NCBI RefSeq assembly: GCF_902713615.1
Contig: NC_052149.1
Coordinates: 234,334,069-234,398,068 of the forward strand
Length of the DNA stretch: 64,000 nucleotides
Source of the DNA: Scyliorhinus canicula
Taxonomy: Eukaryota
Direction: 5' to 3'
Shown in pieces: positions 5 to 61,345 of the stretch; position 1 is the first letter of the stretch; each line of letters opens with the position of its first letter. The translations under genes were made by a program, and so were the position numbers. Below the pieces are notes generated by a model. The model was not told where the DNA came from. It made no database searches and saw only the letters and a program-made list of their open reading frames with translations.

Positions 5-2365
5 ATGATGATGGTTTTTGTTGTATTGATTTGTGCACTGTATGTGGTTTCTGCGCAGATTCGGTATTCTGTTCCCGAGGAAATGGAGCAAGGAGCTGTA
101 ATTGGTAATATTGCTGAAGATTTGGGGCTGAATATTGCAACATTGTCAGGTCGGAAAGTTCGGCTGGTCGCTGACTACACAAAACGCTATTTGGAAGTCA
201 ATTTGGAAAATGGCTTGTTACTTGCCAATGAAAGAATAGACAGAGACAAGCTTTGTGGACCAATCACGACATGTGTTCTTTCCTTCCAAATAGTGTTTGA
301 AAATTCTCCAGAGATGTACCGCGGTGAAGTGGAGATTCTTGATATAAATGATAATTCTCCCAGTTTCCCGGAGAGTGTCATTCTCTTACGAATGGCCGAA
401 ACCATGGCGCCAGGCTCCAGCTTTCCGCTAGAGAGCGCTCTCGATCCAGACGTGGGGACAAATGCAGTCTCTGATTATAACATCAGCCCCAATGAACACT
501 TCTGTCTAAAAGAGAAATTTGTAGATGACGGTACTAAAATTGTCCAGTTGCTGTTGGAGAAACCGTTGGATCGCGAACGGCAGTCATCCTTTCAGCTGAT
601 GCTGACGGCCACTGACGGAGGGAATCCTCCCAGATCTGGGACCGCTCGGATTCTCATCACTGTGCTGGACAGCAACGACAATGCGCCTACTTTCGCACGC
701 GAGATCTACAAGGTCAGCCTGATAGAAAACTCACCCAGAGGTACCTTGGTGGTTTCAGTCCATGCCACTGATCTGGACGAAGGTTCGAACGCGGAGGTAA
801 CTTATTCTTTCAGTAACCGTGTTTCACAGAAAATGCAGGAACTGTTTAGTTTGGATCCTCGAACAGGAGAGATTCGGGTGCAGGGTATAATTGATTATGA
901 AGGAGCAAGCAGTTATTCACTTGATGTTCAAGCTGCTGATAACGGTTCCCCGGCAATAATAGGACATTCTAAAGTGTTGATTAAATTAATAGATGTCAAT
1001 GATAACGCCCCTGAGATAAAAGTGACCATAATATCAAGTATGGTCCCAGAAGACGCTGCTCCCGGGACTGTTGCAGCTCTGGTCAATGTAAATGATCGAG
1101 ATTCTGGGAACAATGGAAAGGTGCACTGCGAGATCCATAAGAACGTTCCGTTTAAACTTCAATCGACTAAGATAGGTAATTATAAACTGATAACCAGTGA
1201 CATGTTGGACCGTGAAAACACGCCCCTGTACAACATAGCTATTTTAGCCAGGGACTCGGCCTCTCCTTCACTATCAACAAATACAACCATTCTGATATCG
1301 GTGTCTGATGTAAACGATAACGCCCCAAGGTTTGCACGACCCATGGACACAGTGTATGTGACGGAGAACAACTCCCCCGGTGCTTCTATTTTCGCAGTGA
1401 CTGCTTTCGATCCTGACCAGGATCAGAATTCCTACGTCACTTACTCTTTCATAGACAACCTTATTCAAGTGTTACCATTGTCAAATTACCTCAATCTTAA
1501 TTCGATGAACGGGACCATTTACGCGCTGCGCTCTTTTGACTACGAGCGGGTGAAAAACTTCCAGATTCAAGTCCAAGCCCGAGACGCTGGCGTTCCCCCT
1601 CTGAGCAGCAGCGCAACATTGAATGTGATCATCCTGGATCAGAATGACAACGCTCCAGTAATTGTGTCACCTTCAGCACAGAGCGGATCAGCAGGAGTGG
1701 AAGTTGTGCCTCAGTCAGCGGGCCAGGGGTACTTGGTCACCAAGATAATCGCAACTGATGCTGATTCCGGTCAGAACGCACGGCTCCTCTATCAGGTGCT
1801 GAAAGCCACTGATCCCAGTCTGTTCATCGTGGGGCTTCACTCTGGAGAAATCAGAACAGCCCGAGGAATTTTGGAGCAGGATTCTACCACCCAGAGCCTT
1901 GTGATCTTGGTGAAGGATAATGGACAGCCGAGTCGCTCCAGCACGGCTACAATCCACTTTTCAATCCTGGGCAATGTTACTGAGATTTTCTCAGAAAGTA
2001 GTAATTCAGTGACAAATCCTGAATATGTCTCTGATGTAAATCTTTATTTAATTGTCATTTTAGGTTCAACTTCCTTCATATTTCTTGCAACCATCATTTT
2101 GCTGATTGGCATCAAGTGTAAACAGGATAGAAATTCTCCAGAAGACTACAACTCCCCAAGTATTTGCTATGGACTGGACGATTCTAACAATGCGTTTAAT
2201 CAGAGACCAATACTGAAAGAATCTTTAAATTATACTGGGGCTGGAGAGATTATCCACATCCCTGACACGCATCATTATTCAGTTTGTCTGTCTCCCGAAT
2301 CAGCTAAGAGCGATTTTCTGTTTTTGAAGCCTTACATACCACCGATGTCTCAGGGCCAATGTTAA
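5..2365 (+). CDS. Clustered-type protocadherin, gene 1 (signal peptide, 6 EC repeats, TM, short tail); EC1 divergent from neighbours
   Basis: 786-aa ORF with QIRYSVPEE start of EC1, CX5C (LCGPITTC), repeated DxNDNxP / LDRE / DxDxG Ca-binding motifs, TM LYLIVILGSTSFIFLATIILLIGI and tail motif HHYSVCLSPESAKSDFLFLKP. The frame is open to the window edge, so the true start and promoter may lie upstream. Confidence 0.95.
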   Translation: MMMVFVVLICALYVVSAQIRYSVPEEMEQGAVIGNIAEDLGLNIATLSGRKVRLVADYTKRYLEVNLENGLLLANERIDRDKLCGPITTCVLSFQIVFENSPEMYRGEVEILDINDNSPSFPESVILLRMAETMAPGSSFPLESALDPDVGTNAVSDYNISPNEHFCLKEKFVDDGTKIVQLLLEKPLDRERQSSFQLMLTATDGGNPPRSGTARILITVLDSNDNAPTFAREIYKVSLIENSPRGTLVVSVHATDLDEGSNAEVTYSFSNRVSQKMQELFSLDPRTGEIRVQGIIDYEGASSYSLDVQAADNGSPAIIGHSKVLIKLIDVNDNAPEIKVTIISSMVPEDAAPGTVAALVNVNDRDSGNNGKVHCEIHKNVPFKLQSTKIGNYKLITSDMLDRENTPLYNIAILARDSASPSLSTNTTILISVSDVNDNAPRFARPMDTVYVTENNSPGASIFAVTAFDPDQDQNSYVTYSFIDNLIQVLPLSNYLNLNSMNGTIYALRSFDYERVKNFQIQVQARDAGVPPLSSSATLNVIILDQNDNAPVIVSPSAQSGSAGVEVVPQSAGQGYLVTKIIATDADSGQNARLLYQVLKATDPSLFIVGLHSGEIRTARGILEQDSTTQSLVILVKDNGQPSRSSTATIHFSILGNVTEIFSESSNSVTNPEYVSDVNLYLIVILGSTSFIFLATIILLIGIKCKQDRNSPEDYNSPSICYGLDDSNNAFNQRPILKESLNYTGAGEIIHIPDTHHYSVCLSPESAKSDFLFLKPYIPPMSQGQC

Positions 2366-2533
2366 AATGTATAGGTTTGACAACATTGAGGCATTGTGAA
2401 ATTAATGGCCATCTCAGTTACTGCCGATTGAATTACTGAAACTATTTACCTACCAAGGACATGCATTATAGAATGAAAGGTTCGTCCTTGTCCTGCAACT
2501 GTGAAGTGGTGGTCATCAAAAGATATTGTGAAA

Positions 2534-2539
2534 AATAAA
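2534..2539 (+). terminator. Putative poly(A) signal of gene 1
   Basis: AATAAA ~170 nt after the stop, in context gtgaaaAATAAAaggctccat, conserved behind all six paralogs. Confidence 0.55.
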
Positions 2540-3235
2540 AGGCTCCATTAAAGTACAGCGACGTGTCTGAAACTGGCATCTGTTATCTAGGAAGGGATGC
2601 CGGCAGGCGAGTTATTGCACGAGCTACATAATTAAGTTTGTTGTTAAGGTCCGTTCCAGAATTGACCTCGGGGCATTGATACCTGAATGTATTTGGATTA
2701 ATTCCCTCACGGTTTGCAATTTGAAATACCAACAAAAGCGATTGGAAGGATCTTATTCCCTCAGAAAATCGAAAAGGGTAATTTCATAGCTTGCTCAATG
2801 GATTCTTATGGTGACTTCCATAGAGATGCCCGACTGAAGTTATTCCGCATTGACCCGCGAAATTGGTTTAAAACTACTTTCAAAGTGCAGAATATTAGTG
2901 TGATAAAGTATAATACATTTTCGGACCCTGCACACTCAAATGTAATAGCTGAGAGAAGAAGTAAACGCCGAAAACATACTGTTTGATCTGCATGATTCAC
3001 TTCATTTCTATAAGTATGCTAATATTATCTGCACTCATCGGTTACAAAGAATTACATAATTTACAAAGAATGTACAACACAGAGAAATTGCTTCTGGCCC
3101 GGTAAGTCACTGAAGGTTTTGATCCTCCATATCAGTCTCCTCCCGCCTTTAGTTTTCAAACTTAATCTGCATACTTTTTCATAATACTGCTGGGATGTCC
3201 TTTGGCTTAGAACAGATATTATCCTCATCCTAATT

Positions 3236-3696
3236 TTTTAACTTAAAAGTGTGTGGGCGTCGCTGGTTATGCCAGCATTTATTGCCCGTCCCGAGATGCC
3301 TTTCAGAAGGTGGTGGTCAGTTACTTTCTTGAACCACTGCAGGCCGTCAGGTGTAGGTACACCCACAGTGCTTTTAGAGAGGGAGATTCCGGATTTTGGC
3401 TCAGTGACAGCGAAGGAACGACGATATATTTCCAAGTCAGGATGGTGAGTGACTTGGATGGATCCTCCAGACGGTGGGGTTGCCAGTTATCTGATGCTCT
3501 TGTCATTCTAAATGGTTGTGGTTGTGGGTTTTTAAGGTGCAGTCGAAGCAACCTTGGTGAGTTACTGCAGTGCATCTTGTAGATGGTACACATGGGCTGC
3601 CACTGTTCGTCAGTGGTGGAGGGTTTGAATGTTTGTGGAAGGGGGAGCAACCAAGCTGGCTGCTTTGTCCCGGAAGGCGTCGAGCTTCTTGCGTGT
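3236..3696 (-). mobile_element. L2/CR1-group LINE 3' fragment (insertion A)
   Basis: Minus-strand remnant peptides CTIYKMHCSNSPRLLR and EIYRRSF..VGVPTP.GLQ.FKK..HHLLKG resemble a LINE ORF2 C-terminus. The same insertion is at 18323-18768; the empty site is at ~29110. Confidence 0.75.
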
Positions 3697-4330: not shown

Positions 4331-4393
4331 TAGAATATAGAACTTTACAGCGCAGAACAGGCCCTTCAGCCCTCGATGTTGTGCCGACCTGTG

Positions 4394-14970: not shown

Positions 14971-14992
14971 GCTGTGTCGCTGCGGATCAATG
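14971..14992 (+). promoter_or_regulatory. CSE / CGCT-box-like promoter element of gene 2 (putative CTCF site)
   Basis: GCTGTGTCGCTGCGGATCAATG, ~235 nt upstream of the ATG; position and core match the clustered Pcdh conserved sequence element. Confidence 0.7.
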
Positions 14993-15212: not shown

Positions 15213-17609
15213 ATGGCAGATCCACGGATAACCAACGGCTTAAAATTCAGACCATTTGATATTATTTTCCTTGTTTTTGTATCGGATCTGGCTTTCGCAA
15301 AGATTCACTATTCGATTCGCGAAGAAATGGAGCCTGGCGCATTTGTTGGGAATGTCGCCGAAGATTTGGGATTGGACATTCGGAGGCTGTCAGCTCGAAA
15401 ATTCCGACTGGTTCCAGCTGATAAAAGGCAATGTTTGGAGGTGAATTTAGAAAGCGGCATTTTATTTGTGAACAAGAGGAAAGATAGGGAACAGCTGTGT
15501 GGGCAGATGCCAGCTTGTCTTCTTTCTTTCGAGATTTTCGTGGAAGAACCTTTGGAGATGTACCGCGGTGAAGTGGAGATTCTTGATATAAATGATAATT
15601 CACCCAGTTTCCCGGAGAGTGTTATTCTCTTACAAATGGCAGAATCCATGGCGCCAGGCTCTCGATTTCCGCTAGAGAGCGCTCTCGATGCAGACGTGGG
15701 GACAAATGCAGTCTCTGTGTATAATATCAGCCCGAATGAGCACTTCGGTCTAAAAGTGGAGACTGCAGAAGACGGTACTAAACTTGTACTGTTGGTGTTG
15801 GAGAAACCGTTGGATCGCGAACGGCAGTCATCCTTTCAGCTGATGCTGACGGCAACTGACGGAGGGAATCCTCCCAGATCTGGGACCGCTCGGATTCTCA
15901 TCACTGTGCTGGATATCAACGACAATGCACCTCGTTTCGATAGTAACGTTTACAAGGTCAGCCTGATAGAAAACTCTCCAAGAGGTACCTTGGTGGTTTT
16001 AGTCCATGCCACTGATCCAGACGAAGGTTCGAATGCGGAGGTAACTTATTCTTTCAGTAACCGTGTTTCACAGAAAATACAGGAACTGTTTAGTTTGGAT
16101 CCTCGCACAGGAGAGATTCGTGTTCAGGGCACAATTGATTATGAGGAAGGTGACAATTATTCACTTGATATTCAAGCTGTGGACAATGGTTCACCGGCAA
16201 TTGGAGGACATTCTAAAGTTCTGGTTAAGGTAAATGATGTCAATGACAACGCCCCTGAGATATTACTAAAGTCAATTGCTAGCAGGGTCCCAGAAGATGC
16301 TGCTCCCGGGACTGTGACAGCTCTGATCAATGTAATCGATCGAGATTCTGGAAAAAACGGACAGGTGCGCTGCGACATCCCTAAGAACGTTCCCTTTAAA
16401 CTTCAAAAAACTTCGAGTGGTCATTACAAATTGATAACCAGTGATATGTTGGACAGTGAAACCACCCCTCTGTACAGCATAGCTATTTTAGCCAGGGACT
16501 CCGGGTCTCCTCCACTATCAACAAATAAAACCATTCAGATAACGGTGTCTGATATAAACGATAACGCCCCAAGGTTTGCTCGACCGATGGACACGGTGTA
16601 TGTGATGGAGAACAACGCTCCCGGTACTTCTATTTTCGCAGTGACTGCTTCCGATCCTGACCAGGATCAGAATTCCTACGTCACTTACTCTTTCATAGAC
16701 AACCTGATTCAAAATTTACCATTGACAAATTACCTCAATCTTAATTCGATGAACGGGACCATTTACGCGCTCCGCTCATTTGACTACGAGCGTGTTAAAA
16801 ACTTCCAGATTCAAGTCCAAGCCCGAGACTCTGGCGTTCCCCCTCTGAGCAGCAGCGCAACATTAAATGTGATTATCCTGGATCAGAATGACAACGCTCC
16901 AATAATTGCGTCACCTTCAGCACAGAGCGGATCAGCAGGAGTGGAGGTTGTGCCTCAGTCAGCGGGCCAGGGGTACTTGGTCACCAAGATAATCGCAACT
17001 GATGCTGATTCCGGTCAGAACGCACGGCTCCTCTATCAGGTGCTGAAAGCCACTGATCCCAGTCTGTTCATCGTGGGGCTTAACTCTGGAGAAATCAGAA
17101 TAGCCCGAGGAATTTTGGAGCAGGATTCTACCACCCAGAGGCTTGTGATCTTGGTGAAGGATAATGGACAGCCGAGTCTCTCCAGCACGGCTACAATCCA
17201 CTTTTCAATCTTGGGCAATGTTACTGAAATCTTCTCCGAAAGTAGTAACTTAGTGAGAAATCCTGAACATGTCTCTGATATAAATCTCTATTTAATTGTC
17301 ATTTTTGGTTCAACTTCCTTTATATTTCTTATAACCATAATATTGCTGATTGGCATCAAGTGTAAACAGGATAGAAATTCACCTGAAGTTTACAACTCCC
17401 CAAGTTGTTGCGATGGACTGGACGATTCTAACAATGCCTTTGATCCGAGACCTACACTGAAAGAATCTTTAAATTATACTGGGGCTGGAGAAATTATTCG
17501 CATCCCTGACACGCATCATTATTCAGTTTGTCTCTCTCCCGAATCGGCTAAGAGCGATTTTCTGTTTTTGAAACCCTACACACCATCCATGTCTCAGGAC
17601 CGATGTTAA
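15213..17609 (+). CDS. Clustered-type protocadherin, gene 2
   Basis: 798-aa ORF with the same architecture; CX5C LCGQMPAC; ends KSDFLFLKPYTPSMSQDRC*. Confidence 0.95.
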   Translation: MADPRITNGLKFRPFDIIFLVFVSDLAFAKIHYSIREEMEPGAFVGNVAEDLGLDIRRLSARKFRLVPADKRQCLEVNLESGILFVNKRKDREQLCGQMPACLLSFEIFVEEPLEMYRGEVEILDINDNSPSFPESVILLQMAESMAPGSRFPLESALDADVGTNAVSVYNISPNEHFGLKVETAEDGTKLVLLVLEKPLDRERQSSFQLMLTATDGGNPPRSGTARILITVLDINDNAPRFDSNVYKVSLIENSPRGTLVVLVHATDPDEGSNAEVTYSFSNRVSQKIQELFSLDPRTGEIRVQGTIDYEEGDNYSLDIQAVDNGSPAIGGHSKVLVKVNDVNDNAPEILLKSIASRVPEDAAPGTVTALINVIDRDSGKNGQVRCDIPKNVPFKLQKTSSGHYKLITSDMLDSETTPLYSIAILARDSGSPPLSTNKTIQITVSDINDNAPRFARPMDTVYVMENNAPGTSIFAVTASDPDQDQNSYVTYSFIDNLIQNLPLTNYLNLNSMNGTIYALRSFDYERVKNFQIQVQARDSGVPPLSSSATLNVIILDQNDNAPIIASPSAQSGSAGVEVVPQSAGQGYLVTKIIATDADSGQNARLLYQVLKATDPSLFIVGLNSGEIRIARGILEQDSTTQRLVILVKDNGQPSLSSTATIHFSILGNVTEIFSESSNLVRNPEHVSDINLYLIVIFGSTSFIFLITIILLIGIKCKQDRNSPEVYNSPSCCDGLDDSNNAFDPRPTLKESLNYTGAGEIIRIPDTHHYSVCLSPESAKSDFLFLKPYTPSMSQDRC

Positions 17610-17786: not shown

Positions 17787-17792
17787 AATAAA
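17787..17792 (+). terminator. Putative poly(A) signal of gene 2
   Basis: Conserved AATAAA ~180 nt after the stop. Confidence 0.55.
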
Positions 17793-25167: not shown

Positions 25168-25189
25168 GCTGTGTCTCTGCGGACCAATG
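25168..25189 (+). promoter_or_regulatory. CSE-like element of gene 3 (core CGCT changed to CTCT)
   Basis: GCTGTGTCTCTGCGGACCAATG, ~210 nt upstream of the ATG. Confidence 0.6.
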
Positions 25190-25384: not shown

Positions 25385-27778
25385 ATGACAGAGCAACGGA
25401 TAAGCAACGCCTTACAATTCAGACCGTTGGATGTTATTTTACTTCTTTTTGTATCGGATCTGGTTTTCGCAGAGATTCACTATTCTATTCGCGAAGAAAT
25501 AGAGTCTGGCGCGTTTGTTGGGAATATTGCGGAAGATTTGGGACTGAACATTCGGAGGCTGTCAGCTCGAAAATTCCGAATGGCTCCTGCTGATAAAAGG
25601 CATTGTTTGGAGGTGAATTCAGAAACCGGCATTTTATTTGCTAACGAGAGGATAGATAGGGAACAGCTGTGTGGGCAGCTGCCTGCGTGTGTCCTTTCTT
25701 TCGAGATTGTCGTGGACGAACCTTTGGAGATGTACCGCGGTGAAGTAGGGATTCTGGATATAAATGATAATTCGCCCACTTTCCCGGAGAGTGTCATTCT
25801 CTTACAAATGGCCGAAACCATGGCGCCAGGCTCTCGATTTCCGCTAGAGAGCGCTCTCGATCCAGACGTTGGGACAAATGCAGTCTCTGTTTACAATATT
25901 AGCCCGAATGAGCACTTCGGTCTCAAGGTGCAAATTGGAGAGGACGATACTAAAATTGTCCAGTTGCTGCTGGAGAAGCCGTTGGATCGCGAAAGGCAGT
26001 CATCCTTTCAGCTGATGCTGACGGCCACTGACGGGGGGAATCCCCCCAGATCTGGGACCGCTCGGATTCTCATCACTGTGCTGGACAGCAACGATAATGC
26101 CCCTGATTTCGGTCGCGAGAACTACAGGGTCAGCCTGATAGAAAACTCACCCAGAGGTACCTTGGTGGTTTCAGTCCAGGCCACTGATCCAGACGAAGGT
26201 TCGAACGCGGAGGTAACATATTCTTTCAGTAACCGTGTTTCACAGAAAATGCAGGAACTGTTTAGTTTGGATCGTCGAACAGGAGAGATTCGTGTTCAGG
26301 GCATAATTGATTATGAAGAAGGTGACAATTACTCACTTGATGTTCAAGCTGTAGACAATGGTTCACCGGCAATTGCAGGACATTGTAAAGTTCTGATTAA
26401 GGTAATGGATGTGAATGACAACGCCCCTGGCATATTACTGACGTCCGTTGCTAGCATGGTCCCAGAAGATGCTGCTCCCGGGACTGTGACAGCTCTGATC
26501 AATGTAATCGATCGAGATTCAGGAAGAAACGGAGAAGTGCACTGCGAGATCCCTAAGAATGTTCCCTTTAAACTTCAAATATCTTCGAGTGGCCATCACA
26601 AATTGATAACCAGTGACATGTTGGACCGTGAAACCACCCCTCTGTACAACATAGCTATTTTAGCCAGGGACTCGGGGTCTCCACCGCTCTCAACAATTAA
26701 AACTATTCAGATAACGGTATCTGACATTAACGATAACGCCCCAAGGTTTGCTCGACCCATGGACACAGTGTATGTGATGGAGAACAACGCTCCCGGTACT
26801 TCTATTTTCACAGTGACTGCTTTCGATCCTGACCAGGATCAGAATTCGTACGTCACTTACTCTTTCATAGACATCCTGATTCAAGATTTTCCATTGTCAA
26901 ATTACCTCAATCTTAATTCGATGAATGGGACCATTTACGCTCTCCTTACATTTGACTACGAGCGAGTGAAAAACTTCCAGATTCAAATTCAAGCCCGAGA
27001 CGCTGGCGTCCCCCCTCTGAGCAGCACCGCAACATTGAATGTGATCATCCTGGATCAAAATGACAACGCTCCGGTAATTGTTTCACCTTCAGCACAGAGC
27101 GGAACAGCAGGAGTGGGGGTTGTGCCTCAGTCAGCGGGCCAGGGGTACTTGGTCACCAAGATAATCGCAACTGATGCTGATTCCGGTCAGAACGCACGGC
27201 TTCTCTATCAGGTGCTGAAAGCCACTGATCCCAGTTTGTTCATCGTGGGGCTTAACTCTGGAGAAATCAGAACAGCCCGAGGGATTTTAGAGCAGGATTC
27301 TCCCACCCAGACTCTTGTGATCTTGGTGAAGGATAATGGACAGCCGAGTCTCTCCAGCACGGCTACAATCCACTTTTCAATCTCGGGGAATGTTACCGAA
27401 ATTTTCCCCGAAAGTAGTAACTTAGAGACAAATCCTGAATATGTCTCTGATATAAATCTTTATTTAATTGTCATTTTAGGTTCAACTTCCTTTATATTTC
27501 TTGTAATCATCATTTTGCTGATTGGCATCAAGTGTAAACAGGACAGAAATTCTCCAGAAGACTACAACTCTCCAAGTTCTTGCTATGGACTGGAGGAGTC
27601 TAATAATGCCTTTAATCTGACACCTACACTGAAAGAATCGTTAAATTATACTGGGGCTGGAGAAATTGTTCAAATCCCTGAAACGCATCATTATTCAGTT
27701 TGTCTGTCTCCCGAATCAGCTAAGAGCGATTTTCTGTTTTTGAAACCCTACACAGCACCCTTGACTCAGCACCAATGA
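25385..27778 (+). CDS. Clustered-type protocadherin, gene 3
   Basis: 797-aa ORF with the same architecture; ends LKPYTAPLTQHQ*. Confidence 0.95.
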   Translation: MTEQRISNALQFRPLDVILLLFVSDLVFAEIHYSIREEIESGAFVGNIAEDLGLNIRRLSARKFRMAPADKRHCLEVNSETGILFANERIDREQLCGQLPACVLSFEIVVDEPLEMYRGEVGILDINDNSPTFPESVILLQMAETMAPGSRFPLESALDPDVGTNAVSVYNISPNEHFGLKVQIGEDDTKIVQLLLEKPLDRERQSSFQLMLTATDGGNPPRSGTARILITVLDSNDNAPDFGRENYRVSLIENSPRGTLVVSVQATDPDEGSNAEVTYSFSNRVSQKMQELFSLDRRTGEIRVQGIIDYEEGDNYSLDVQAVDNGSPAIAGHCKVLIKVMDVNDNAPGILLTSVASMVPEDAAPGTVTALINVIDRDSGRNGEVHCEIPKNVPFKLQISSSGHHKLITSDMLDRETTPLYNIAILARDSGSPPLSTIKTIQITVSDINDNAPRFARPMDTVYVMENNAPGTSIFTVTAFDPDQDQNSYVTYSFIDILIQDFPLSNYLNLNSMNGTIYALLTFDYERVKNFQIQIQARDAGVPPLSSTATLNVIILDQNDNAPVIVSPSAQSGTAGVGVVPQSAGQGYLVTKIIATDADSGQNARLLYQVLKATDPSLFIVGLNSGEIRTARGILEQDSPTQTLVILVKDNGQPSLSSTATIHFSISGNVTEIFPESSNLETNPEYVSDINLYLIVILGSTSFIFLVIIILLIGIKCKQDRNSPEDYNSPSSCYGLEESNNAFNLTPTLKESLNYTGAGEIVQIPETHHYSVCLSPESAKSDFLFLKPYTAPLTQHQ

Positions 27779-27942: not shown

Positions 27943-27948
27943 AATAAA
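27943..27948 (+). terminator. Putative poly(A) signal of gene 3
   Basis: Conserved AATAAA. Confidence 0.55.
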
Positions 27949-33097: not shown

Positions 33098-33718
33098 AAG
33101 TTAACTGCAGCTATAAGTTAGCTGTACATGGAGTACCGAAATTGAATTACATACTTTACATCTCTTGTCGATGCCTATTTCCAAAAACATCAATTTTATT
33201 GTTCATAAGTTAACTGTTTTCAAAATAAGCATAAAATGATGTTATCAAAACTAAATAAGCTGAGATTCAAAAGAATGTTCAATTTCTGCATTTGGATCGG
33301 GGACACTAATAGTATTTCAAAGTTCTTTATGAAAGCTTTTGGAAAACCCATGATAAGTTGGAAGTAATTATGAGAAGACTGTCATTTATACAATGTAGAT
33401 ATGGATTCTGTTTCTTTGCAAAACGATATCATCTGGTGGTATGTGGGACAATGCATATGATGCTGCCGTGACAAGTACTGAAATTGTTTTGGCGCGGGTT
33501 GCATGCAAAGGAAATCAATGGAAGACTTGACATTATAATTTGATTGCATCTGAAAGATGTAGTGATGGCCTCTAAAAAGATTCTTCCCCGAATGTAATGA
33601 ATGCCGGATTGTGCGTATTATGGTTGTACACTGTTAAAATAATCATCCTGATTGCAGCTCCTCACATCAGGAGCTGTGCAGCTTTAAGAAAAACTGGTGT
33701 AATGCAAGGGGCTGACTC

Positions 33719-33740
33719 GCTGTGTCGCTGCGGACCAATG
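33719..33740 (+). promoter_or_regulatory. CSE / CGCT box plus CCAAT of gene 4
   Basis: GCTGTGTCGCTGCGGACCAATG, ~235 nt upstream of ATG 33960. Confidence 0.72.
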
Positions 33741-33959
33741 AGGATCTCAAATACAAGCAGAGATCTATTGCTCCTCCTCCGGCACATAAGCAGAACAGGA
33801 ACAGAAAGTCAATCGGTGCCTGCAATCATTCTGTGGAAAGGTCTCTGCGAATTCGCACGACATTCTGACATTAAGGTATTTTGTCGATTATGCGATCGGG
33901 CAGCGCTTGACCTGAATAAGCTACCGGTTTATTTTTGCGCCTCTCCAAATATAACCGCA

Positions 33960-36371
33960 ATGGCAGAGCCACGGATAACCAACGCCTTAAAATTCAGACC
34001 ATTGGGTATTATTTTCCTTCTTTTTGTATCGGACCTGGTTTTCGGAAAGATACACTATTCTATACGCGAAGAAATGGAGTCTGGCGCGTTTATTGGGAAT
34101 GTCGCCGAAGATTTGGGATTGAGCATTCGGAGGCTGTCAGCTCGGAAATTCCGACTGGTTCCTGCTGATAAAAGGCAATGTTTGGAGGTGAATTCTGAAA
34201 CCGGCATTTTATTTGCGAGCGAAAGGTTAGATAGGGAGCAGCTGTGCGGGCAGATGCCAGCTTGTGTTCTTTCTTTCCAGATTGTAGTGGAAGAACCTTT
34301 GGAGATGTACCGCGGCGAAGTGGAGATTCTTGATATAAATGATAATTCACCCAGTTTCCCGGAGAGTGTCATTCTCTTGCAAATGGCCGAAACCATGGCG
34401 CCAGCCTCTCGATTTCCGCTAGAGAGCGCTCTCGATCCAGACATGGCGACAAATGCGGTCTCTGTTTATAACATCAGCCCCAATGAGCACTTCGGTCTAA
34501 AAGTGGAGACTGCAGAAGACGGTACTAAAATTGTCGAGTTGTTATTGGAGAAGCCGCTGGACCGCGAACGGCAATCATCCTTTCAGCTGATGCTGACGGC
34601 CACTGACGGAGGGAATCCTCCCAGATCTGGGACCGCTCGGATTCTCATTACTGTGCTGGATATCAACGACAATGCGCCTGCGTTCGTTAGCAAGTCATAC
34701 AAAGCCAGCCTAATAGAAAACTCTCCAAGAGGCTCCTTGGTAGTTTCAGTCCTTGCCACTGATCCAGACGAAGGTACGAACGGGGAGGTAACTTATTCTT
34801 TCAGTAACCGTGTTTCACAGAAAATGCAGGAACTGTTTAGTTTGGATCCTCGAACAGGAGAGATTCGTGTTCAGGGTATAATTGATTATGAGGAAGATGA
34901 CAATTTTTCACTTGATATTCATGCTGTCGACAATGGTTCACCGGCAATTGCAGGACATTCTAAAGTTCTGGTTAAGGTAATTGATGTAAATGATAACGCC
35001 CCTGGGATTTTACTGACGTCCGTTGCTGGCATAGTCCCTGAAGATGCTGCTCCCGGGACTGTGACAGCTCTGATTGATGTAATCGACCGAGATTCAGGAA
35101 AAAACGGAGAGGTGCACTGCGAAATCCCTAAGAACGTTCCCTTTCAACTTCAGTCATCTTCGAGAGGTCATTACAAATTGATAACCAGTGACATGTTGGA
35201 CCGTGAAACCACCCCTCTGTACAACATAGTTATTGTAGCCAGGGACTCGGGGTCTCCTCCTTTATCAACAAATAAAACAATTCAGATAACTGTATCTGAT
35301 ATAAACGATAACGCCCCAAGGTTTGCTCGACCTATGGACACTGTGTATGTGATGGAGAACACCGCTCCCGGCTCTTCTATTTTCGCAGTGACTGCTTTCG
35401 ATCCTGACCAGGATCAGAATTCCTACATCACTTACTCTTTCATGGAAAATCTAATTCGAGATTTACCGTTGTCAAATTATCTCAATCTTAATTCGAAGAA
35501 CGGGACCATTTACGCGCTGCGCCCCTTTGACTACGAGCGAATGAAAAACTTCCAGATTCAAGTTCAAGCCCGAGACGCTGGCGTTCCCCCTCTGAGCAGC
35601 AGCGCAACATTGAATGTGATCATCCTGGATCAGAATGACAACGCTCCAGTAATTGTTTCACCTTCAGCACAGAGCGGATCAGCAGGAGTCGTGATTGTGC
35701 CTCAGTCAGCGGGCCAGGGGCACTTGGTCACCAAGATAATCGCAACTGATGCTGATTCTGGTCAGAACGCACGGCTCATCTATCAGCTGCTGAAAGCCAA
35801 TGATCCCAGTCTGTTCATCGTGGGGCTTCACTCTGGAGAAATCAGAACAGCCCGAGGAATTTTGGAGCAGGATTCTCCCACTCAGAGTCTTGTGATCTTG
35901 GTGAAGGATAATGGACAGCCGAGTCTCTCCACCACGGCTACAATCCACTTTTCCATCTTGGGCAATGTTAGTGGAATTTTCGCCGAAAGCAGTAACTTCG
36001 TGACAAATCCTGAATATGTCTCTGATATAAATCTTTATTTAATTATCATTTTAGGTTCAACTTCCTTTATATTTCTTATAACCATCATTTTGCTGATTGG
36101 CATCAAGTGTAAACAGGACAGAAATACTCCTGAAGACTACAACTCCACAAGTATTAGCTATGGACTGGACGATTCTAATAATGCCTTTAATCTGAGACCA
36201 ACACTGAAAGAATCTTTAAATTATACTGGAGCTGGCGAGATTATTCACATCCCTGAAACGCATCATTATTCAGTTTGTCTGTCTCCCGAATCAGCAAAGA
36301 GCGATTTTTTGTTTTTAAAGCCCTACACATCGCCCATGTCTCAGGACCAATGTCCAATTCAAAATAATTGA
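33960..36371 (+). CDS. Clustered-type protocadherin, gene 4
   Basis: ATG 33960 (MAEPRITNAL) is homologous to the paralog starts. The track's 121 extra upstream codons run through the promoter. The tail reads past the usual stop (DQCPIQNN*). Confidence 0.93.
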   Translation: MAEPRITNALKFRPLGIIFLLFVSDLVFGKIHYSIREEMESGAFIGNVAEDLGLSIRRLSARKFRLVPADKRQCLEVNSETGILFASERLDREQLCGQMPACVLSFQIVVEEPLEMYRGEVEILDINDNSPSFPESVILLQMAETMAPASRFPLESALDPDMATNAVSVYNISPNEHFGLKVETAEDGTKIVELLLEKPLDRERQSSFQLMLTATDGGNPPRSGTARILITVLDINDNAPAFVSKSYKASLIENSPRGSLVVSVLATDPDEGTNGEVTYSFSNRVSQKMQELFSLDPRTGEIRVQGIIDYEEDDNFSLDIHAVDNGSPAIAGHSKVLVKVIDVNDNAPGILLTSVAGIVPEDAAPGTVTALIDVIDRDSGKNGEVHCEIPKNVPFQLQSSSRGHYKLITSDMLDRETTPLYNIVIVARDSGSPPLSTNKTIQITVSDINDNAPRFARPMDTVYVMENTAPGSSIFAVTAFDPDQDQNSYITYSFMENLIRDLPLSNYLNLNSKNGTIYALRPFDYERMKNFQIQVQARDAGVPPLSSSATLNVIILDQNDNAPVIVSPSAQSGSAGVVIVPQSAGQGHLVTKIIATDADSGQNARLIYQLLKANDPSLFIVGLHSGEIRTARGILEQDSPTQSLVILVKDNGQPSLSTTATIHFSILGNVSGIFAESSNFVTNPEYVSDINLYLIIILGSTSFIFLITIILLIGIKCKQDRNTPEDYNSTSISYGLDDSNNAFNLRPTLKESLNYTGAGEIIHIPETHHYSVCLSPESAKSDFLFLKPYTSPMSQDQCPIQNN

Positions 36372-36533: not shown

Positions 36534-36539
36534 AATAAA
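36534..36539 (+). terminator. Putative poly(A) signal of gene 4
   Basis: Conserved AATAAA. Confidence 0.55.
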
Positions 36540-43547: not shown

Positions 43548-43569
43548 GCTGTGTCGCTGCGGACTGATG
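43548..43569 (+). promoter_or_regulatory. CSE-like element of the pseudogene (CGCT intact, CCAAT lost)
   Basis: GCTGTGTCGCTGCGGACTGATG. Confidence 0.6.
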
Positions 43570-44203
43570 AGGATCTCAAATACAAGCAGAGATCTATTTC
43601 TCCTCCGACGAAACGGAACCAGAACAGAAACAGAAATATAATCGTTTCCTGCGTTCACTTTGTGGAAAAGTATCTGTCAATTCGCTAGGCATTCTGATAT
43701 TGAGCTATTTTGTGGACTATGCGATCGGGCAGCGCTTGAGCTGAATAGATTATCGGTTTATTTTTGCGCGTCTCCAAATATAACCGGTAATGGCAGAGCC
43801 ACGGATAACCAACGCCCTAAAATTCAGGCCATTGGATATTATTTTCCTTCTTCTTGTATCGGATCTGGTTTTCGGAAAGATTCACTATTCTATTCGGGAA
43901 GAAATAGAGCCTAGCGCATTTGTTAGGAATGTGGCCGAAGATTTGGAATTGAACGGAGGCTGTCAGCTCGAAAATTCCGACGGGCTCCAGCTGATAAAAG
44001 GCAATGTTAGGAGGTGAATTTCGAAACCGGCATTTTATTTGTGAACGAAAGGATAGATAGGGAACAGCTGCGTGGGCAGAGACCAGCTTGTCTTCTTTCT
44101 TTCCAGATTGTCGTGGAAGAACCGTTGGAGATGTACCGCGGTGAATTGGAGATTCTTGTTATAAATGATAATTCATCCGGAAAGTGTCATTCTCTAACAA
44201 ATG

Positions 44204-44530
44204 AACAAAGAAAATTACAGCACAGGAACAGGCCCTTTGGCCCTCCCAGCGAGCGCCGATCGAGATCCTTTATCTAAACCTGTTGCCTATTTTCCAACGT
44301 CTACTTCTCTCCGTTCCCCACCCGTTCATATATCTAACCCGATGCGTCTTACATGATGCTATCGTACCCGCCTCCACCACCTCCGCTGGCAAAGCATTCC
44401 AGGCACCCACCACCCTCTGCGTAAAAAAACCTTTCCACGCACATCTCCCTTGAACTTTTCCCCTCTCACCTTGAAATCGTGACCCCTTGTAATTGACACC
44501 CCCACTCTTGGAAAAAGCTTGTTGCTATCC
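44204..44530 (-). mobile_element. CR1 3' fragment inserted in EC2 of the pseudogene
   Basis: aacaaagaaaattacagcacaggaacaggccc tail; peptide LFPRVGVSITRGHDFKVRG; same family at 57415-57617. Confidence 0.88.
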
Positions 44531-46268
44531 ATGGTCGAATCCATCCATGGCGCCAGACTCTCGATTTCCGCTAGAGAGCGCTCTCGATCCAGACATGGGG
44601 ACAAATGCAGTCACTGTTTATAATATCAGCTCCAATAAGCACTTCGGGCTAAAAGTGGAGACTGCCGAATTGGGTACTAAAATTGTCAGTTGTTAATGGA
44701 GAAACCGTTGGACCGGGAACGGCAGTCATCCTTTCAGCTGATGAAGACAGCCACTGACTGAGGGAATCCTCCCAGATCTGGGGCCGCTCGGATTCTCATC
44801 ACTGTGCTGGACAGCAATGACAAAGTGCCTGCGTTCGATAACAAGGCCTACAAGGTCAGCTTGATAGAAAACACACCCAGAGATACCCTGGTGGTTTCAG
44901 TCCATGCCACGAAGGTACGAACGGGGACGTAACTTATTCTTTCAGTAACCGTGTGTCACCGCAAATGCAGGAAGTGTTTAGTTTGAGTCCTCGAAAAGGC
45001 GAGATTCGTGTTCAGGGTATAATTGATTAAGAGGAAGGTGACAATAATTCACTTGATGTTCAAGTTGCCGAGAATGGTTCAGCGGCAATTGCAGGACTTT
45101 CTGAAGTTCTGGTTAAGGTAATAGATGTAAATGATAATGCACCTGGGATATTAATGGAGTCCGTTGCGAACATGGTCCCTGAAAATGCTGTACACGGAAA
45201 TGTGACAGCTCTGATTGATGTAATTCGGGATTCTGGGAAAAATGGACAGGTGCACTGCGAGATCCCTCAGAACATTCCCTTTAAACTTCAGTCGTCTTCG
45301 AGAGGTAACTACAAATTCATAACCAGTGACATGTTAGACCGTGAAACCACCCCTCTGTACAACATAGCTATTTGAGCCAGGGACTCGGCCTCCCCTCCAT
45401 TATCAACAAATAAAACCATTCAGATAACTGTATCTGATAGCAACGATAACCCCCCAAGGTTTGCTCGACTCATGGACACAGTGTATGTGATGGAGAACAA
45501 CGCTCCCACTGCTTCTATTTTAGCAGTGACTGCTTTCGATCCTGACCAGGATCAGAATTTATACGTCACTTACCGTTTCATAGACAACTTGATTCACTGT
45601 CAAATTACGCCAATCGTAATTCGATTTACGCGCTGCGCTCTTTTGACTCCGAGCGAGTGAAAACCTTCACGATTCAAGTCCAATCCCGAGACGCTGGCGT
45701 TCCCCCTCTGAGCAGCAGCACAACCTTGAATGCGATCATCCTGGATCAGAATGACAGCGCTCCAGTAATTGTTTCACCTTCAGCACAGAGCGGATCAGCA
45801 GAAGTGGAGGTTATGCCTCAGTCAGTGTGCCAGGGGCACTTGGTGACCAAGATAATCGCAACTGATGCTGATTCTGGTCAGAACGCACGGCTCCTCTATA
45901 AGGTGCTGAAATCCACTGATCCCAGTTTGTTCATCGTGGGGCTTAACTCTGGAGAAATCAGAACAGCCCGAGGAATTTTGGAGCAGGATTCTACCACCCA
46001 GAGCCTTGTGATCTTGGTGAAGGATAATGGACAGCCGAGACTCTCGCACGGCTACAATCCACATTTAAATCTTGTGCAATGTTACTGACATTTCCTCCAT
46101 ATATAGTAGCTTGGTGACAAATCCTGAATATGTCTGTGATATAAATCTTTATTTAATTGTCATTTTCGGTTCAACTTCCTTTATATTTCTTGTGACCATT
46201 ATTTTGCTGATTGGCATCAAGTGTAAACGGGACAGAAATACTCCAGAAGACTACAACTCCCCAAGTTG

Positions 46269-46620
46269 GGTAAGGCAGCACGGTAGCATAATGGTTAGCA
46301 CAATTGCTTCACAGCTCCAAGGTCCCAGGTTCGATTCCCGGCTTGGGTTACTGTCTGTGCGGAATCTGCAAATTCTTCTCGTGTGTGCGTGGGTTTCCGC
46401 CGGGTGCTCCGGTTTCCTCCCACAGTCCAAAGATATGCAGGTTCGGTGGATTGGCCATGCTAAATTGCACTGAGTATCCAAAATTGCCTTTTGTGTTGGG
46501 TGGGGTCACTGGGTAATGGGGATGGGGTGGTGGTGTGGACCTTGGGTTGGGTGCTCTTTCCAAGAGCCCGTGCAGACTCGATGGGTCGACTGGCCTCCTT
46601 CACACTGTAAATTCTATGAT
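46269..46620 (+). mobile_element. Full-length V-SINE in the pseudogene cytoplasmic region
   Basis: Near copy of 31009-31368; TSD AAGTTG (46263-46268 and 46621-46626). Confidence 0.93.
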
Positions 46621-47003
46621 AAGTTGTTGCTCTGGTCTGGACGATTCTACCAATGCCTTTAATCGAGACCTACACTGAAAGAATCTTTAAATTATACTGG
46701 AGCTGGTGAGATTATTCACAACTCTGAAACGCATCATTATTCAGTTTGTCTGTCTCCCGAATCAGCAAAGAGCGATTTTCTGTTTTTGGAGCCCTACACA
46801 TCGCCCATGTCTCAGGTCCAATGTTAAAATGTAAAGAATAGACAACATTGAGGCAGTGTGAAATTAATGTCCATCTCTGTCAAATCCGTCCCTGCCGGTT
46901 GAATTGCTGAAACTATTTCCCTTTGAGCATCTCTATTATAGAATTAATGGATATTTGTTGTCCGACAACTATCAAGTATTATTCATCCAAAGAAATTGTG
47001 AAA

Positions 47004-47009
47004 AATAAA
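47004..47009 (+). terminator. AATAAA behind the pseudogene
   Basis: Same position as in the intact genes. Confidence 0.45.
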
Positions 47010-52750: not shown

Positions 52751-52919
52751 TGCCTGTCACTTTTGTACCGATTCAAAATCTCTCTACCAAGCTGCTCCTC
52801 TACCTCTCGCTGGCATTTTGGTGGCCTGCAATGAACTCCCAACATTGTAAGTGCCCCTTTCCTGTTCCAGACCTTTACCCAGATTGCCTCATTGCTTAGA
52901 ACTGACATTAATCTGATTT

Positions 52920-54109: not shown

Positions 54110-54224
54110 GCTGTGATGAACAATAATCAACGTTTGATTCAAAAGATTATTCAATTTCTGCATCCGGAAAGGCGATAATGCCAGTATGTCAAAGTACTTC
54201 AGAACTGTCAAGTACAAAATAGTC

Positions 54225-57841: not shown

Positions 57842-58006
57842 AGTCGGACAGCTCCTCAAATTCAAAGTGATTGAGAGAAGACGGGCATCAATACATTTAT
57901 AGGTATGGAAGCTTCTCCTTCGTCAAAAAATGTCACCGAGTGATAGGTGAAAAATACAGATGATGCTGTCCGGCCAACTGTTGAAACTCTTTGATGTGCA
58001 AAGGAA

Positions 58007-58318
58007 CGTAGAACATACAATGCAGAAGGAGGCCATTCGGCCCATCGAGTCTGAACCGATCCAATTAAGCCCTCACTTCCACCCTATCCCCAACCAGTAA
58101 CACCTGCTAACCTTTTCTTGTCACTAAGGGAAATTTATCATGACCAATATACCTAACCTGCACGTCTTTGGACTTTGGGAGGAAACCGGAGCACCCGGAG
58201 GAAACCCAGGCAGACACGGGGAGAACATGCAGACTCTGCACACATAGTGACTCAGGAGGGAATCGAACCTGTGACCCTGGCGCGATGAAGCCACAGTGCT
58301 AACCACTGTGCTACCGTG
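58007..58318 (-). mobile_element. V-SINE about 220 bp upstream of the gene 6 CSE
   Basis: tRNA head, V-domain, tail gaaggaggccattcggccc. Confidence 0.88.
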
Positions 58319-58535
58319 TAGCACAAATGAAATGAATGGAAAGATTCCAGATTGTAATTTAATTGCATTTAAAGGAGTAGTGGTGATCTTTAAAGAGAAA
58401 TGCCGCTGGGAGGAACTTCAAGCCGGCTTGTGTGTGTTATGGTTGTGCAATAATAATAGGATCCGTCATTGAAGGCCCTCAAATCAGGAGCTGTGCCGCT
58501 TTAAGAAAAACTGGTGAAATGAGAGGGAGCGGTTT

Positions 58536-58557
58536 GCTGTGTCGCTGCGGACCAATG
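58536..58557 (+). promoter_or_regulatory. CSE / CGCT box plus CCAAT of gene 6
   Basis: GCTGTGTCGCTGCGGACCAATG, ~238 nt upstream of the ATG. Confidence 0.72.
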
Positions 58558-58780
58558 CGGATGAAAATATAAGCAGAGATCTCTTGCTCCTTCTCCGGCA
58601 CAGAACCAGAACTGGAACAGAAAGACAATCGTTGCCTGCGTTAATTTTGTGGAAAGGTCAATGCGAATTTGCTCGGCATTCTGATAAGAAGGTATTTTGT
58701 GGATTATGCGATCGGGAAGTCAGCGTTTGACCAGAATAGACTACCGGTTTATTTCTACGCCTCTCCAAATATAACCAGCA

Positions 58781-61177
58781 ATGGCAGAGCCACGAATAAG
58801 AAACGCCTTAAAATTCAGACTCTTTGATATTATTTTCCTTCTTTTTGTATCGGATCTGGTTTTCGGAAAGACTCACTATTCTATTCGCGAAGAAATGGAG
58901 TCTGGCGCGTTTGTTGGGAATGTCGCCGAAGATTTGGGATTGAACATTCGGAGGCTGTCAGCTCGAAAATTCCGACTGGTTCCTGCTGATAAAAGACAAT
59001 GTTTGGAGGTGAATTTAGAAACCGGGATTTTATTTGCTAACGAGAGGATAGATAGGGAACAGCTGTGTGGGCAGATGCCAGCTTGTGTCCTTTCTTTCAA
59101 GATTGTCGTGGAAGAACCGTTGGAGATGTACCGCGGTGAAGTGGAGATTATTGATATAAATGATAATTCGCCCAGTTTTCCGGAGAGTGTCATTCTCTTA
59201 AAGATGGCCGAATTTCTTGCACCTGGCTCTCGATTTCCGCTAGAGAGCGCTCTCGATCCAGACATGGGGACAAATGCAGTAAGTGTTTACAATATCAGTC
59301 CCAATGAGCACTTCGGTCTACAAGTGGAGACTGCAGAAGACGGTGGTAAACTTGTCGAGATGTTACTGGAGACACCGTTGGATCGCGAACTGCAGTCATC
59401 CTTTCAGCTGATGCTGACGGCCACTGACGGAGGGAATCCTCCCAGATCTGGGACCGCTCGGATTCTCATCACTGTGCTGGACAGCAATGACAATGCGCCT
59501 GCGTTTGATAGCAAGACCTACAGGGGTAGCCTGAGAGAAAACTCACCCAGAGGTACCTTGGTGGTTTCAGTCCATGCCACTGATCGAGACGAAGGTTCGA
59601 ACGGGGAGGTAACATATTCTTTCGGTAACCGTGTTTCACAGAAAATACAGGAACTGTTTAGTTTGGACCCTCATACAGGAGAGATTCGTGTTCAGGGTAT
59701 AATTGATTATGAAGAAGGTGACAATTACTCACTTGATGTTCAAGCTGTAGACAATGGTTCACCGGCAATTGCAGGACATTCTAAAGTGTTGATTAATGTA
59801 ATAGATGTGAATGATAACGCCCCTGTAATATTACTGACGTCCATGGCGAGCATGGTTCCTGAAGATGCTGTTCCCGGTACTGTGACAGCTTTGATTGATG
59901 TAATCGATCGAGATTCTGGGAAAAATGGACAGGTGCACTGCGAAATCCCTAAGAGCGTTCCCTTTAAACTTCAATCGTCTTCGAATGGTCATTACAAATT
60001 GATAACCAGTGACATGTTGGACCGTGAAACCACCCCTCTGTACAACATAGCTATTTTAGCCAGGGACTCGGGGTCTCCTCCGCTCTCAACAAATAAAACC
60101 ATTCAGATAACGGTCTCTGATATAAATGATAACGCCCCAAGGTTTGCTCGACCCATGGACACAATGTATTTGATTGAGAACAACGCTCCTGGTGCTTCTA
60201 TTTTCGCAGTGACTGCTTTCGATCCTGACCAGGGTCAGAATTCCTACGTCTCCTACTCTTTCATAGCCAACCCGATTCAAGATTTTCCATTGTCAAATTT
60301 CCTGAATATTAATTCGATGAACGGGACCATTTACGCGCTGCGCTCATTTGACTACGAGCGAGTGAAAAACTTCCAGATTCAAGTCCAAGCCCGAGACGCT
60401 GGCGTTCCCCCTCTGAGCAGCAGCGCAACATTGAATGTGATCACCCTGGATCAGAATGACAACGCTCCAGTAATTGTTTCACCTTCAGCACAGAGCGGAT
60501 CAGCAGGAGTGGAGGTTGTGCCTCAGTCAGCGGGCCAGGGGTACTTGGTCACCAAGTTAATCGCAACTGATGCTGATTCTGGTCAGAACGCACGGCTCCT
60601 CTATCAGGTGCTGAAAGCCACTGATCCCAGTTTGTTCGTCGTGGGGCTTAACTCTGGAGAAATCAGAATAGCCAGAGGGATTTTTGAGCAGGATTCTCCC
60701 ACCCAGAGCCTTGTGATCTTGGTGAAGGATAATGGACAACCGAGTCTCTCCAGCACGGCTACAATACACTTTTCAATCTCGGGCAATGTTACTGAAATAT
60801 TCTCCGAAAGTAGTAATTTAGTGAGAAATCCTGAATATGTCTCTGATATAAATCTTTATTTAATTGTCATTTTAGGTTCAACCTCCTTTATATTTCTTGT
60901 AACCATCATTTTGCTGATTGCCATCAAATGTAAACAGGAAAGACATACTCCTGAAGTCTACAAGTCCCCAAGTTGTTGCTATGGACTGGACGATTCTAAC
61001 AATGCCGTTAATCCGAGACCCACACTGAAAGAATCTTTAAATTATACTGGGTGTGGAGAGATTGTTCATTTCCCTGAAACGCATCATTATTCAGTTTGTC
61101 TGTCTCCCGAATCAGCTAAAAGCGATTTTCTGTTTTTGAAGCCCTACACCCCGCCCATGACTCAGGACCAATGTTAA
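58781..61177 (+). CDS. Clustered-type protocadherin, gene 6
   Basis: 798-aa ORF with the same architecture; ends LKPYTPPMTQDQC*. Confidence 0.95.
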   Translation: MAEPRIRNALKFRLFDIIFLLFVSDLVFGKTHYSIREEMESGAFVGNVAEDLGLNIRRLSARKFRLVPADKRQCLEVNLETGILFANERIDREQLCGQMPACVLSFKIVVEEPLEMYRGEVEIIDINDNSPSFPESVILLKMAEFLAPGSRFPLESALDPDMGTNAVSVYNISPNEHFGLQVETAEDGGKLVEMLLETPLDRELQSSFQLMLTATDGGNPPRSGTARILITVLDSNDNAPAFDSKTYRGSLRENSPRGTLVVSVHATDRDEGSNGEVTYSFGNRVSQKIQELFSLDPHTGEIRVQGIIDYEEGDNYSLDVQAVDNGSPAIAGHSKVLINVIDVNDNAPVILLTSMASMVPEDAVPGTVTALIDVIDRDSGKNGQVHCEIPKSVPFKLQSSSNGHYKLITSDMLDRETTPLYNIAILARDSGSPPLSTNKTIQITVSDINDNAPRFARPMDTMYLIENNAPGASIFAVTAFDPDQGQNSYVSYSFIANPIQDFPLSNFLNINSMNGTIYALRSFDYERVKNFQIQVQARDAGVPPLSSSATLNVITLDQNDNAPVIVSPSAQSGSAGVEVVPQSAGQGYLVTKLIATDADSGQNARLLYQVLKATDPSLFVVGLNSGEIRIARGIFEQDSPTQSLVILVKDNGQPSLSSTATIHFSISGNVTEIFSESSNLVRNPEYVSDINLYLIVILGSTSFIFLVTIILLIAIKCKQERHTPEVYKSPSCCYGLDDSNNAVNPRPTLKESLNYTGCGEIVHFPETHHYSVCLSPESAKSDFLFLKPYTPPMTQDQC

Positions 61178-61339
61178 AATGTAAAGTTCTGACAACATTG
61201 AGGCAGGGTGTAATTAATGGCCACCTCTGTTATCTCCGTCGCTGCCGGTTGAATAACTGAAACTATTTCCCTTCGAGGATCTCTATTATAGAATAAAGGA
61301 TTGTTCTTTTCCTGTTGTAATTCCAAACAGATTGAGAAA

Positions 61340-61345
61340 AATAAA
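61340..61345 (+). terminator. Putative poly(A) signal of gene 6
   Basis: AATAAA is retained although the flanking sequence has diverged. Confidence 0.55.

Follow-up and report, generated by a model that had tools for sequence, protein, structure and literature searches.

A head-to-tail array of apparently autonomous single-exon protocadherin genes of the epsilon type in the catshark Scyliorhinus canicula

When examining a 64,000-nucleotide (nt) stretch of the genome of the catshark Scyliorhinus canicula (assembly GCA_902713615.2; the whole stretch is hereinafter called the window), we found that the array of protocadherin genes on its plus strand is, very probably, part of the catshark Pcdh-epsilon subcluster and consists of autonomous single-exon genes arranged head to tail. 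The copies are large exons that end in frame shortly after the cytoplasmic motif SDFLFLKP, with no splice donor ahead of the stop; the position of the stop codon and the polyadenylation signal behind it are conserved; RNA-type contigs run unspliced over the tail of one copy; and the encoded proteins fall within a fully supported clade together with the epsilon proteins of the elephant shark. A first-pass annotation, made from the sequence, had proposed that these genes are single-exon, independent of constant exons and equipped with separate promoters and poly(A) sites, and this proposal is borne out by the absent donors, the conserved stop and signal, the unspliced contigs and the CGCT/CCAAT box in front of the genes. 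The array is the catshark member of an epsilon subcluster already on record and so is not new in kind.

Gene structure

The window contains five intact protocadherin open reading frames (ORFs) and one pseudogene, all on the plus strand and spaced 8.6-15 kb apart; the six-copy array of the first-pass annotation thus stands as far as the number of copies is concerned, but only five of them are intact. The intact, epsilon-type ORFs are c1 (5..2365; 786 amino acids [aa], its promoter falling outside the window), c2 (15213..17609; 798 aa), c3 (25385..27778; 797 aa), c4 (33960..36371; 803 aa when counted from the homologous ATG, the usual stop being lost and replaced with a 15-codon tail) and c6 (58781..61177; 798 aa). 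The last of these, which has no called gene on record, is represented by RNA-type contigs and by 22 oligo-dT reads of the same orientation. The pseudogene, c5 (43790..46827), is 88.6% identical to c6, relative to which it has gained two repeat insertions (334 bp at 44209 and 358 bp at 46263, tRNA-derived and resembling short interspersed nuclear elements), along with six in-frame stops and seven deletions that shift the frame.

The plan of the array is that of clustered protocadherins, namely, same-strand tandem exons of ~2.4 kb; every exon codes for a signal peptide followed by six cadherin repeats, a membrane span and a short cytoplasmic segment. In the window proteins, this segment is a stub of 83 residues that ends about 10 residues past ...HHYSVCLSPESAKSDFLFLKP. 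In the Pfam comparison, the window protein matches Cadherin_2, five Cadherin domains and Cadherin_C_2, with no match to Cadherin_tail. Same-strand arrays of single large exons are present also in Pristis, Amblyraja, Rhincodon, Heptranchias and Carcharodon.

Termination of the genes

Counted from SDFLFLKP, which in c5 reads SDFLFLEP, the stop comes after 10, 10, 9, 15, 10 and 10 codons in c1 to c6, respectively, with more stops following, in agreement with the 9-15 codons given in the first-pass annotation. The same annotation had found no conserved GT donor in the tail, and indeed no GT ahead of the stop is conserved across the six copies. A 5' splice-site matrix, in which the consensus attains 8.7 bits and the 95th percentile of the background, the 3369 GTs in the window, lies at 1.5 bits, was applied to the GTs of the last 90 nt; in all six copies, every GT in this segment scores below 0 bits, and the sequence CAG/GT occurs only in the tail of the pseudogene, at -4.0 bits. 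When nine genes from Pristis, Amblyraja, Rhincodon and Heptranchias were added as comparison DNA, no donor-like GT above 0 bits was detected in the last 90 nt of any of the 15 genes from the five species. The stop lies exactly 10 codons past the motif in eight of the nine comparison genes, the exception being the second Rhincodon gene, where it follows DFLYFKP by 7 codons; hence this position is common to Scyliorhinus, Heptranchias, Pristis, Amblyraja and Rhincodon, again with further stops behind it. The outcome of a protein search, to which sharks, rays, skates and a sawfish contributed dozens of RefSeq models, conforms to this pattern: among 76 motif-bearing models of no more than 880 aa, 67 end within 12 residues past the motif and 50 end exactly 10 residues past it. 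A longer tail of 19-32 residues after FLKP, of the TLPLNDLN type, is seen in a minority of elasmobranch genes of the epsilon clade (Heterodontus, Heptranchias, Cetorhinus); because this minority tail resembles that of the elephant shark epsilon proteins, the 10-residue tail looks derived.

An AATAAA hexamer lies 163-178 nt downstream of the stop in all six copies, on the plus strand and at the six positions reported at the first pass: 2534..2539 in c1 (169 nt past the stop), 17787..17792 in c2 (178 nt), 27943..27948 in c3 (165 nt), 36534..36539 in c4 (163 nt), 47004..47009 in c5, where it has been kept in the pseudogene, and 61340..61345 in c6 (163 nt). The accompanying remark that the surrounding 3' sequence has visibly diverged overstates the divergence, given that identity among the window copies stays at about 78% as far as roughly +500 nt past the stop. 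Because the flanks are this similar, and because the hexamer is common in the AT-rich window (81 occurrences versus 54 expected), its retention within the window is weak evidence when taken alone. The evidence gains weight from two further observations, namely, that GAAAAATAAA exceeds every other invariant run when the first 520 nt past the stop of the six copies are aligned (only 38% of the columns are invariant, and the other runs span at most 6 columns), and that the signal is conserved across species. Specifically, AATAAA is found at +169 and +167 in the two Pristis genes, at +117 and +179 in the genes of Rhincodon (whale shark) and at +226 in one gene of the skate Amblyraja, and Heptranchias (sevengill shark) has AATAAA at +174 and ATTAAA at +178, in the spot homologous to the catshark signal.

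Between catshark and Heptranchias, the last coding part has an identity of 0.82-0.89; the corresponding values are 0.49-0.63 for the body of the 3' untranslated region (3' UTR), 0.74-0.78 for the signal together with the ~90 nt behind it, and about 0.55 farther downstream. Since identity rises again at the signal, the poly(A) signal and its downstream flank are the constrained part of the 3' region. In c6, the block after the signal occupies 61346..61440 on the plus strand and is conserved both among the paralogues and with Heptranchias. This ~90-nt block (…GAAACTGGCATCTGTTAACTGGGAAGG.AGCCGGCAGGCGA.TTATTCCACGAGCTACA…) is found also after the AATAAA of the other copies, and its 74-78% identity to Heptranchias exceeds that of the 3' UTR body. 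The cleavage site probably lies within it, as does a GU/U-rich downstream element, and it may contain more than these; the block is longer than the usual downstream element, and it fits the CTCF consensus poorly in a comparison made by eye only.

Transcription

Four sequencing runs (X4, X5, X19 and X20) were mapped on 58300-62300, the region of c6. A 390-nt contig from X4 matches 61090-61479 exactly and a 213-nt contig from X5, which belongs to a separate study, matches 61150-61362 exactly; both are unspliced over the FLFLKP tail and the stop, and the X5 contig ends at 61362, 17 nt past the AATAAA. Coverage in X4 is limited to 58612-61479, dropping to zero in 58300-58567 and 61516-62051, and it is because of this exon-like shape that we argue X4 to be RNA, the run record not stating so. 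X20, which is oligo-dT RNA on record, contributes 22 reads, which share one orientation and fall between 58836 and 61247. Reads that splice out of the tail had been named at the first pass as the observation that would count against single-exon genes; at the low depth of the four runs, neither joints nor loose ends leaving the c6 tail were detected. Thus, the RNA evidence for unspliced ends is supportive, not decisive. Farther downstream, the RNA-type runs reach very high contig depth over a repeat at 62052-62300 (mean word depth of 762 in X4), where loose ends are numerous; this is probably an abundant interspersed repeat that is transcribed and has no relation to the genes.

These results bear on the possibility that the copies are ordinary variable exons of the alpha/gamma kind, with constant exons beyond the window and a short tail that is a mere read-through into the intron. 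Such an arrangement would be in keeping with the variable exons of mammalian alpha and gamma genes, which also run in frame to a nearby stop, and with the adjacency of the constant-bearing mu genes to epsilon in the elephant shark, as seen in an Ensembl fusion model that joins an epsilon-type exon to mu1; the low RNA depth is a further point in its favour. Nevertheless, we consider it improbable: the defining feature of the alpha/gamma type, an in-frame 5' splice site joined to constant exons, was not found, donor scores being negative throughout the 15 genes of five species and no joints leaving the tail at low RNA depth; the stop position is conserved in sharks and batoids; the poly(A) block is better conserved than the 3' UTR body; RNA coverage of c6 ends 185-300 nt past the stop and is zero over the next ~570 nt; and in many elasmobranch species the gene models end at about 798 aa.

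In an alignment of the 900 nt before the ATG of the copies, a conserved block at about -290 to -180 includes CTCGCTGTGTCGCTGCGGACCAATGAGG, that is, a CGCT core adjoining a CCAAT box, and this block is conserved in Heptranchias as well. In all five copies with upstream sequence in the window, the ATG is preceded, at a distance of 217-245 nt, by GCTGTGTCGCTGCGGAC followed by CCAAT. These five sites are the only occurrences of the core motif in the window, where none would be expected by chance. The boxes, all on the plus strand, map to 14971..14987 in c2 (242 nt before the ATG), 25168..25184 in c3, 33719..33735 in c4, 43548..43564 in c5, where the box has been kept in the pseudogene, and 58536..58552 in c6, 60 nt upstream of the start of X4 coverage. 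The c3 box reads GTCTCTG in place of the GTCGCTG of the other four copies, so that its core is CTCT instead of CGCT although the gene is otherwise intact. As in other clustered protocadherins, each exon would appear to possess a CGCT-core promoter of its own; PMC2926608 mentions a CGCT element for the protocadherin promoters of mammals and the elephant shark.

The box of c4 is located within a spurious upstream extension of the ORF. The homologous ATG of this copy is at 33960, but the frame stays open through the promoter, which is why the ORF as called begins at 33597 and comprises 924 aa; the open segment upstream of the true ATG (33597-33959) amounts to 121 codons and crosses the CGCT/CCAAT box. 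A RefSeq model from S. torazame (919 aa) has the same upstream extension, which in that case is probably an annotation artefact.

Phylogenetic analysis

A maximum-likelihood tree was built with IQ-TREE from 33 sequences, including five window copies, ten elasmobranch models, the elephant shark epsilon4, epsilon5, mu1 and mu7 proteins, and representatives of alpha, beta and gamma. The window copies, the elasmobranch models and epsilon4/5 formed a single clade with 100/100 support, leaving mu1, mu7, alpha, beta and gamma outside, in a tree several outgroup rows of which are segments carved from fused gene models, some of them long-branched. The sister group of the epsilon clade (99/95) combined mu1 and mu7 with single "protocadherin-10-like" genes of sturgeon, eel and spadefoot toad. 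A phylogeny had been suggested as a check along with the first-pass annotation; the present one covers that suggestion in part, containing neither named delta and nu genes nor any sequence known to be true PCDH10. A search of a representative library with c6 brought up mainly very large or fused multi-cadherin proteins, in an order set by summed score, and no PCDH10, delta or nu sequence suitable for the tree.

The closest proteins of the elephant shark (Callorhinchus milii) fall with the deposits protocadherin epsilon4 (B0YN59, 811 aa) and epsilon5 (B0YN60, 820 aa), at ~60% full-length identity; these and the mu1 and mu7 deposits are reportedly those of Yu et al. 2008. The C-termini of epsilon4 and epsilon5 are short and unlike each other (...TDTHGAKNVARNSE versus ...TDTNVVKEFDQQFNSAMKGQ) and do not match Cadherin_tail. 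By contrast, the mu1 (950 aa) and mu7 (981 aa) proteins share an identical end of ~140 aa (QVGQLNTDWRSS...EEPQNE) that does match this domain. Elephant shark epsilon proteins resemble the window copies in that they contain Cadherin_2, five Cadherin domains and Cadherin_C_2, with no Cadherin_tail and no shared constant region, and in that ...CLSPESAKSDFLFLK is found near their end; they differ in running 25-33 residues past the motif (...TLPQSTLKITDTN...), compared to 10 in most elasmobranch genes. Consistently, a sentence of PMC2764143, a 2009 paper citing Yu et al., that lists constant exon sequences names alpha, gamma, delta, mu and nu only, with epsilon and beta absent from the list. The premise of the first-pass annotation, namely, that constant exons are used by the elephant shark subclusters so far described, is therefore incorrect in the case of epsilon, as judged from the epsilon4/5 deposits and from this list. 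The window genes agree with the epsilon type also in that the protein ends within the large exon, with no constant exons attached, as indicated by the donors, the stop, the poly(A) signal, the unspliced RNA and the deposits. Because epsilon4/5 share the constant-less design, it must predate the split between elasmobranchs and chimaeras. Literature searches on protocadherin clusters of sharks, the catshark included, and on what has been stated explicitly about epsilon returned nothing beyond papers of 2009, 2010, 2016 and 2020; within the library searched, none dealt with the clusters of elasmobranchs.

The first-pass annotation had compared the array with Pcdh-beta, and as far as architecture is concerned the comparison is apt. 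In mammals, coelacanth and lizard, Pcdh-beta genes consist of one exon, lie in tandem and have individual promoters and poly(A) sites, and the encoded proteins, like those of the window, consist of six cadherin repeats, a membrane span and a short stub that ends soon after FLKP, without a constant domain. From this shared design, from the resemblance of the cytoplasmic motif ...CLSPESAKSDFLFLKP to the ...FKFLKP end of the beta/gamma variable domain, and from the location of a constant-less array upstream of a constant-bearing one in both lineages, a case could be made that the array is the shark orthologue of bony-vertebrate Pcdh-beta, which would make beta older than assumed. The tree does not agree with such orthology, which we rate as less probable still than variable exons of the alpha/gamma kind: a Microtus beta16 segment groups with gamma (99/97), outside the epsilon clade, while the array groups with epsilon and has mu and PCDH10-like/delta-like single genes as its sister (99/95). 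This is not a strong test because beta is represented by one long-branched sequence carved from a fused model. The post-FLKP tail is different as well, being about 21 residues long in beta (in one model, P0106) and about 10 here. Hence, the similarity to beta holds for the design of the genes, and orthology to bony-vertebrate beta is not what this tree, with its one long-branched beta sequence, recovers.

Several points weigh against the assignment of the array to autonomous epsilon genes. With regard to termination, two of the three Amblyraja genes contain no AATAAA or ATTAAA within 420 nt. With regard to transcription, X4 and X5 are only guessed to be RNA and their contigs are not proof of ends, RNA depth is low, the X4 contig extends 134 nt beyond the AATAAA, and a rare spliced form may exist at such depth; X19, a single-cell poly(A) run of which ~1% was read, has 0 reads on the gene and hence is uninformative. 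The notion that epsilon is devoid of constant exons rests on the deposits and on a single sentence of PMC2764143, and a place of the catshark array within the protocadherin cluster is supported indirectly, via the elephant shark epsilon-mu1 fusion model. Finally, among proteins of solved structure, c6 matches the human PCDH10 ectodomain best (6vg4, 697 bits), with mouse gamma-B4 scoring lower (6e6b, 597 bits).

This last match, together with the many RefSeq models named protocadherin-10-like, could indicate tandem duplicates of a non-clustered gene of the delta2 type, similar to PCDH10 and located outside the clustered locus. PCDH10 is a single multi-exon gene whose product has a long cytoplasmic domain. 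The window proteins share with it the six cadherin repeats, and its ectodomain is the top-scoring solved structure, but here the genes are short-tailed, single-exon and arranged in tandem, as they are, on the same strand, in every species examined; moreover, the copies join the deposits of the elephant shark epsilon subcluster in one clade, and each is preceded by a CGCT-box promoter. The protocadherin-10-like names are automatic best-hit labels of the kind expected given that mammals have no epsilon genes, and are explained by PCDH10 being the best solved-structure match. We regard an origin from a PCDH10-like gene as the least probable of the three alternatives considered, and retain membership in the epsilon subcluster.

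Divergence among the copies and intervening sequences

The catshark copies are 85-95% identical to one another and are a young lineage-specific expansion. Identity among them is 92-96% in extracellular cadherin (EC) repeats EC5-EC6 and the membrane and cytoplasmic parts (1445-2365 in c1), compared to 84-94% in EC1-EC4; a gradient of this kind in clustered protocadherins is commonly explained by gene conversion. At its 5' end, c1 deviates: its first ~360 nt (positions 5-365 of the window) are only 66-68% identical to the other copies, which are ~90% identical among themselves in this part, whereas past this segment c1 is as similar to the other copies as they are to each other. This pattern fits a recombinant or converted 5' end of c1.

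The spacers between the copies carry ORFs for reverse transcriptases of the long interspersed nuclear element (LINE) type. These include an uninterrupted 935-aa LINE ORF with endonuclease and reverse-transcriptase domains at 4486-7290 on the minus strand, between c1 and c2, and a 463-aa reverse-transcriptase ORF fragment at 37698-39086 on the plus strand, after c4; further LINE-type fragments are found at about 13.1-13.7, 23.4-23.8 and 51-52.4 kb.

Implications

Taken together, the observations give good support to a simple scheme of expression. Each gene is most likely transcribed from its own promoter, the CGCT core with the CCAAT box about 217-245 nt before the ATG; a single exon of ~2.4 kb encodes the signal peptide, the six cadherin repeats, the membrane span and the 83-residue cytoplasmic stub; and a 3' UTR of about 165-180 nt closes with AATAAA and the conserved block, cleavage and polyadenylation most likely occurring about 180-200 nt past the stop. 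Because nothing appears to be spliced onto the tail, the epsilon proteins lack a shared constant cytoplasmic domain, in contrast to the products of the mu-type genes in the cluster and, in bony vertebrates, of the alpha and gamma genes. The variable exons of Pcdh-alpha, Pcdh-gamma and shark Pcdh-mu share with the window genes the large exon plan, the CGCT-box promoter and a related juxtamembrane cytoplasmic sequence, but terminate in a splice donor and are joined to three constant exons, whereas the window genes have neither the donor nor the constant domain. By analogy with mammalian Pcdh-beta, it may be conjectured that the promoters are chosen stochastically in neurons, that the proteins engage in homophilic recognition through EC1-EC4, and that they signal by cis-association with constant-domain isoforms.

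The analysis provides a checked annotation of catshark Pcdh-epsilon genes, with promoter box, ORF, stop and poly(A) site, and corrects the automatic names "protocadherin-10-like" and "gamma-C5-like". No new kind of system is involved, but the elasmobranch-wide picture may merit a short descriptive note. The constant-less design is common to chimaeras, sharks and rays and thus is at least as old as the crown cartilaginous fishes, and the array enables a comparison with mammalian beta genes that addresses the role of protocadherins without a constant domain.

Conceivably, constant-less arrays arose twice in jawed vertebrates, as epsilon upstream of mu in cartilaginous fishes and as beta upstream of gamma in lobe-finned fishes and tetrapods, and the elasmobranch epsilon genes were cut back to the same 10 residues past FLKP, acquired a fixed poly(A) site and multiplied into one of the largest protocadherin groups; we put this forward tentatively, with somewhat less than even confidence. 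Among the best 120 matches of the protein search, epsilon-type models number at least 11 in Pristis and at least 8 in Amblyraja. Should this scenario be correct, the neuronal surface codes of sharks and rays would be built largely on isoforms unable to signal via a constant domain.

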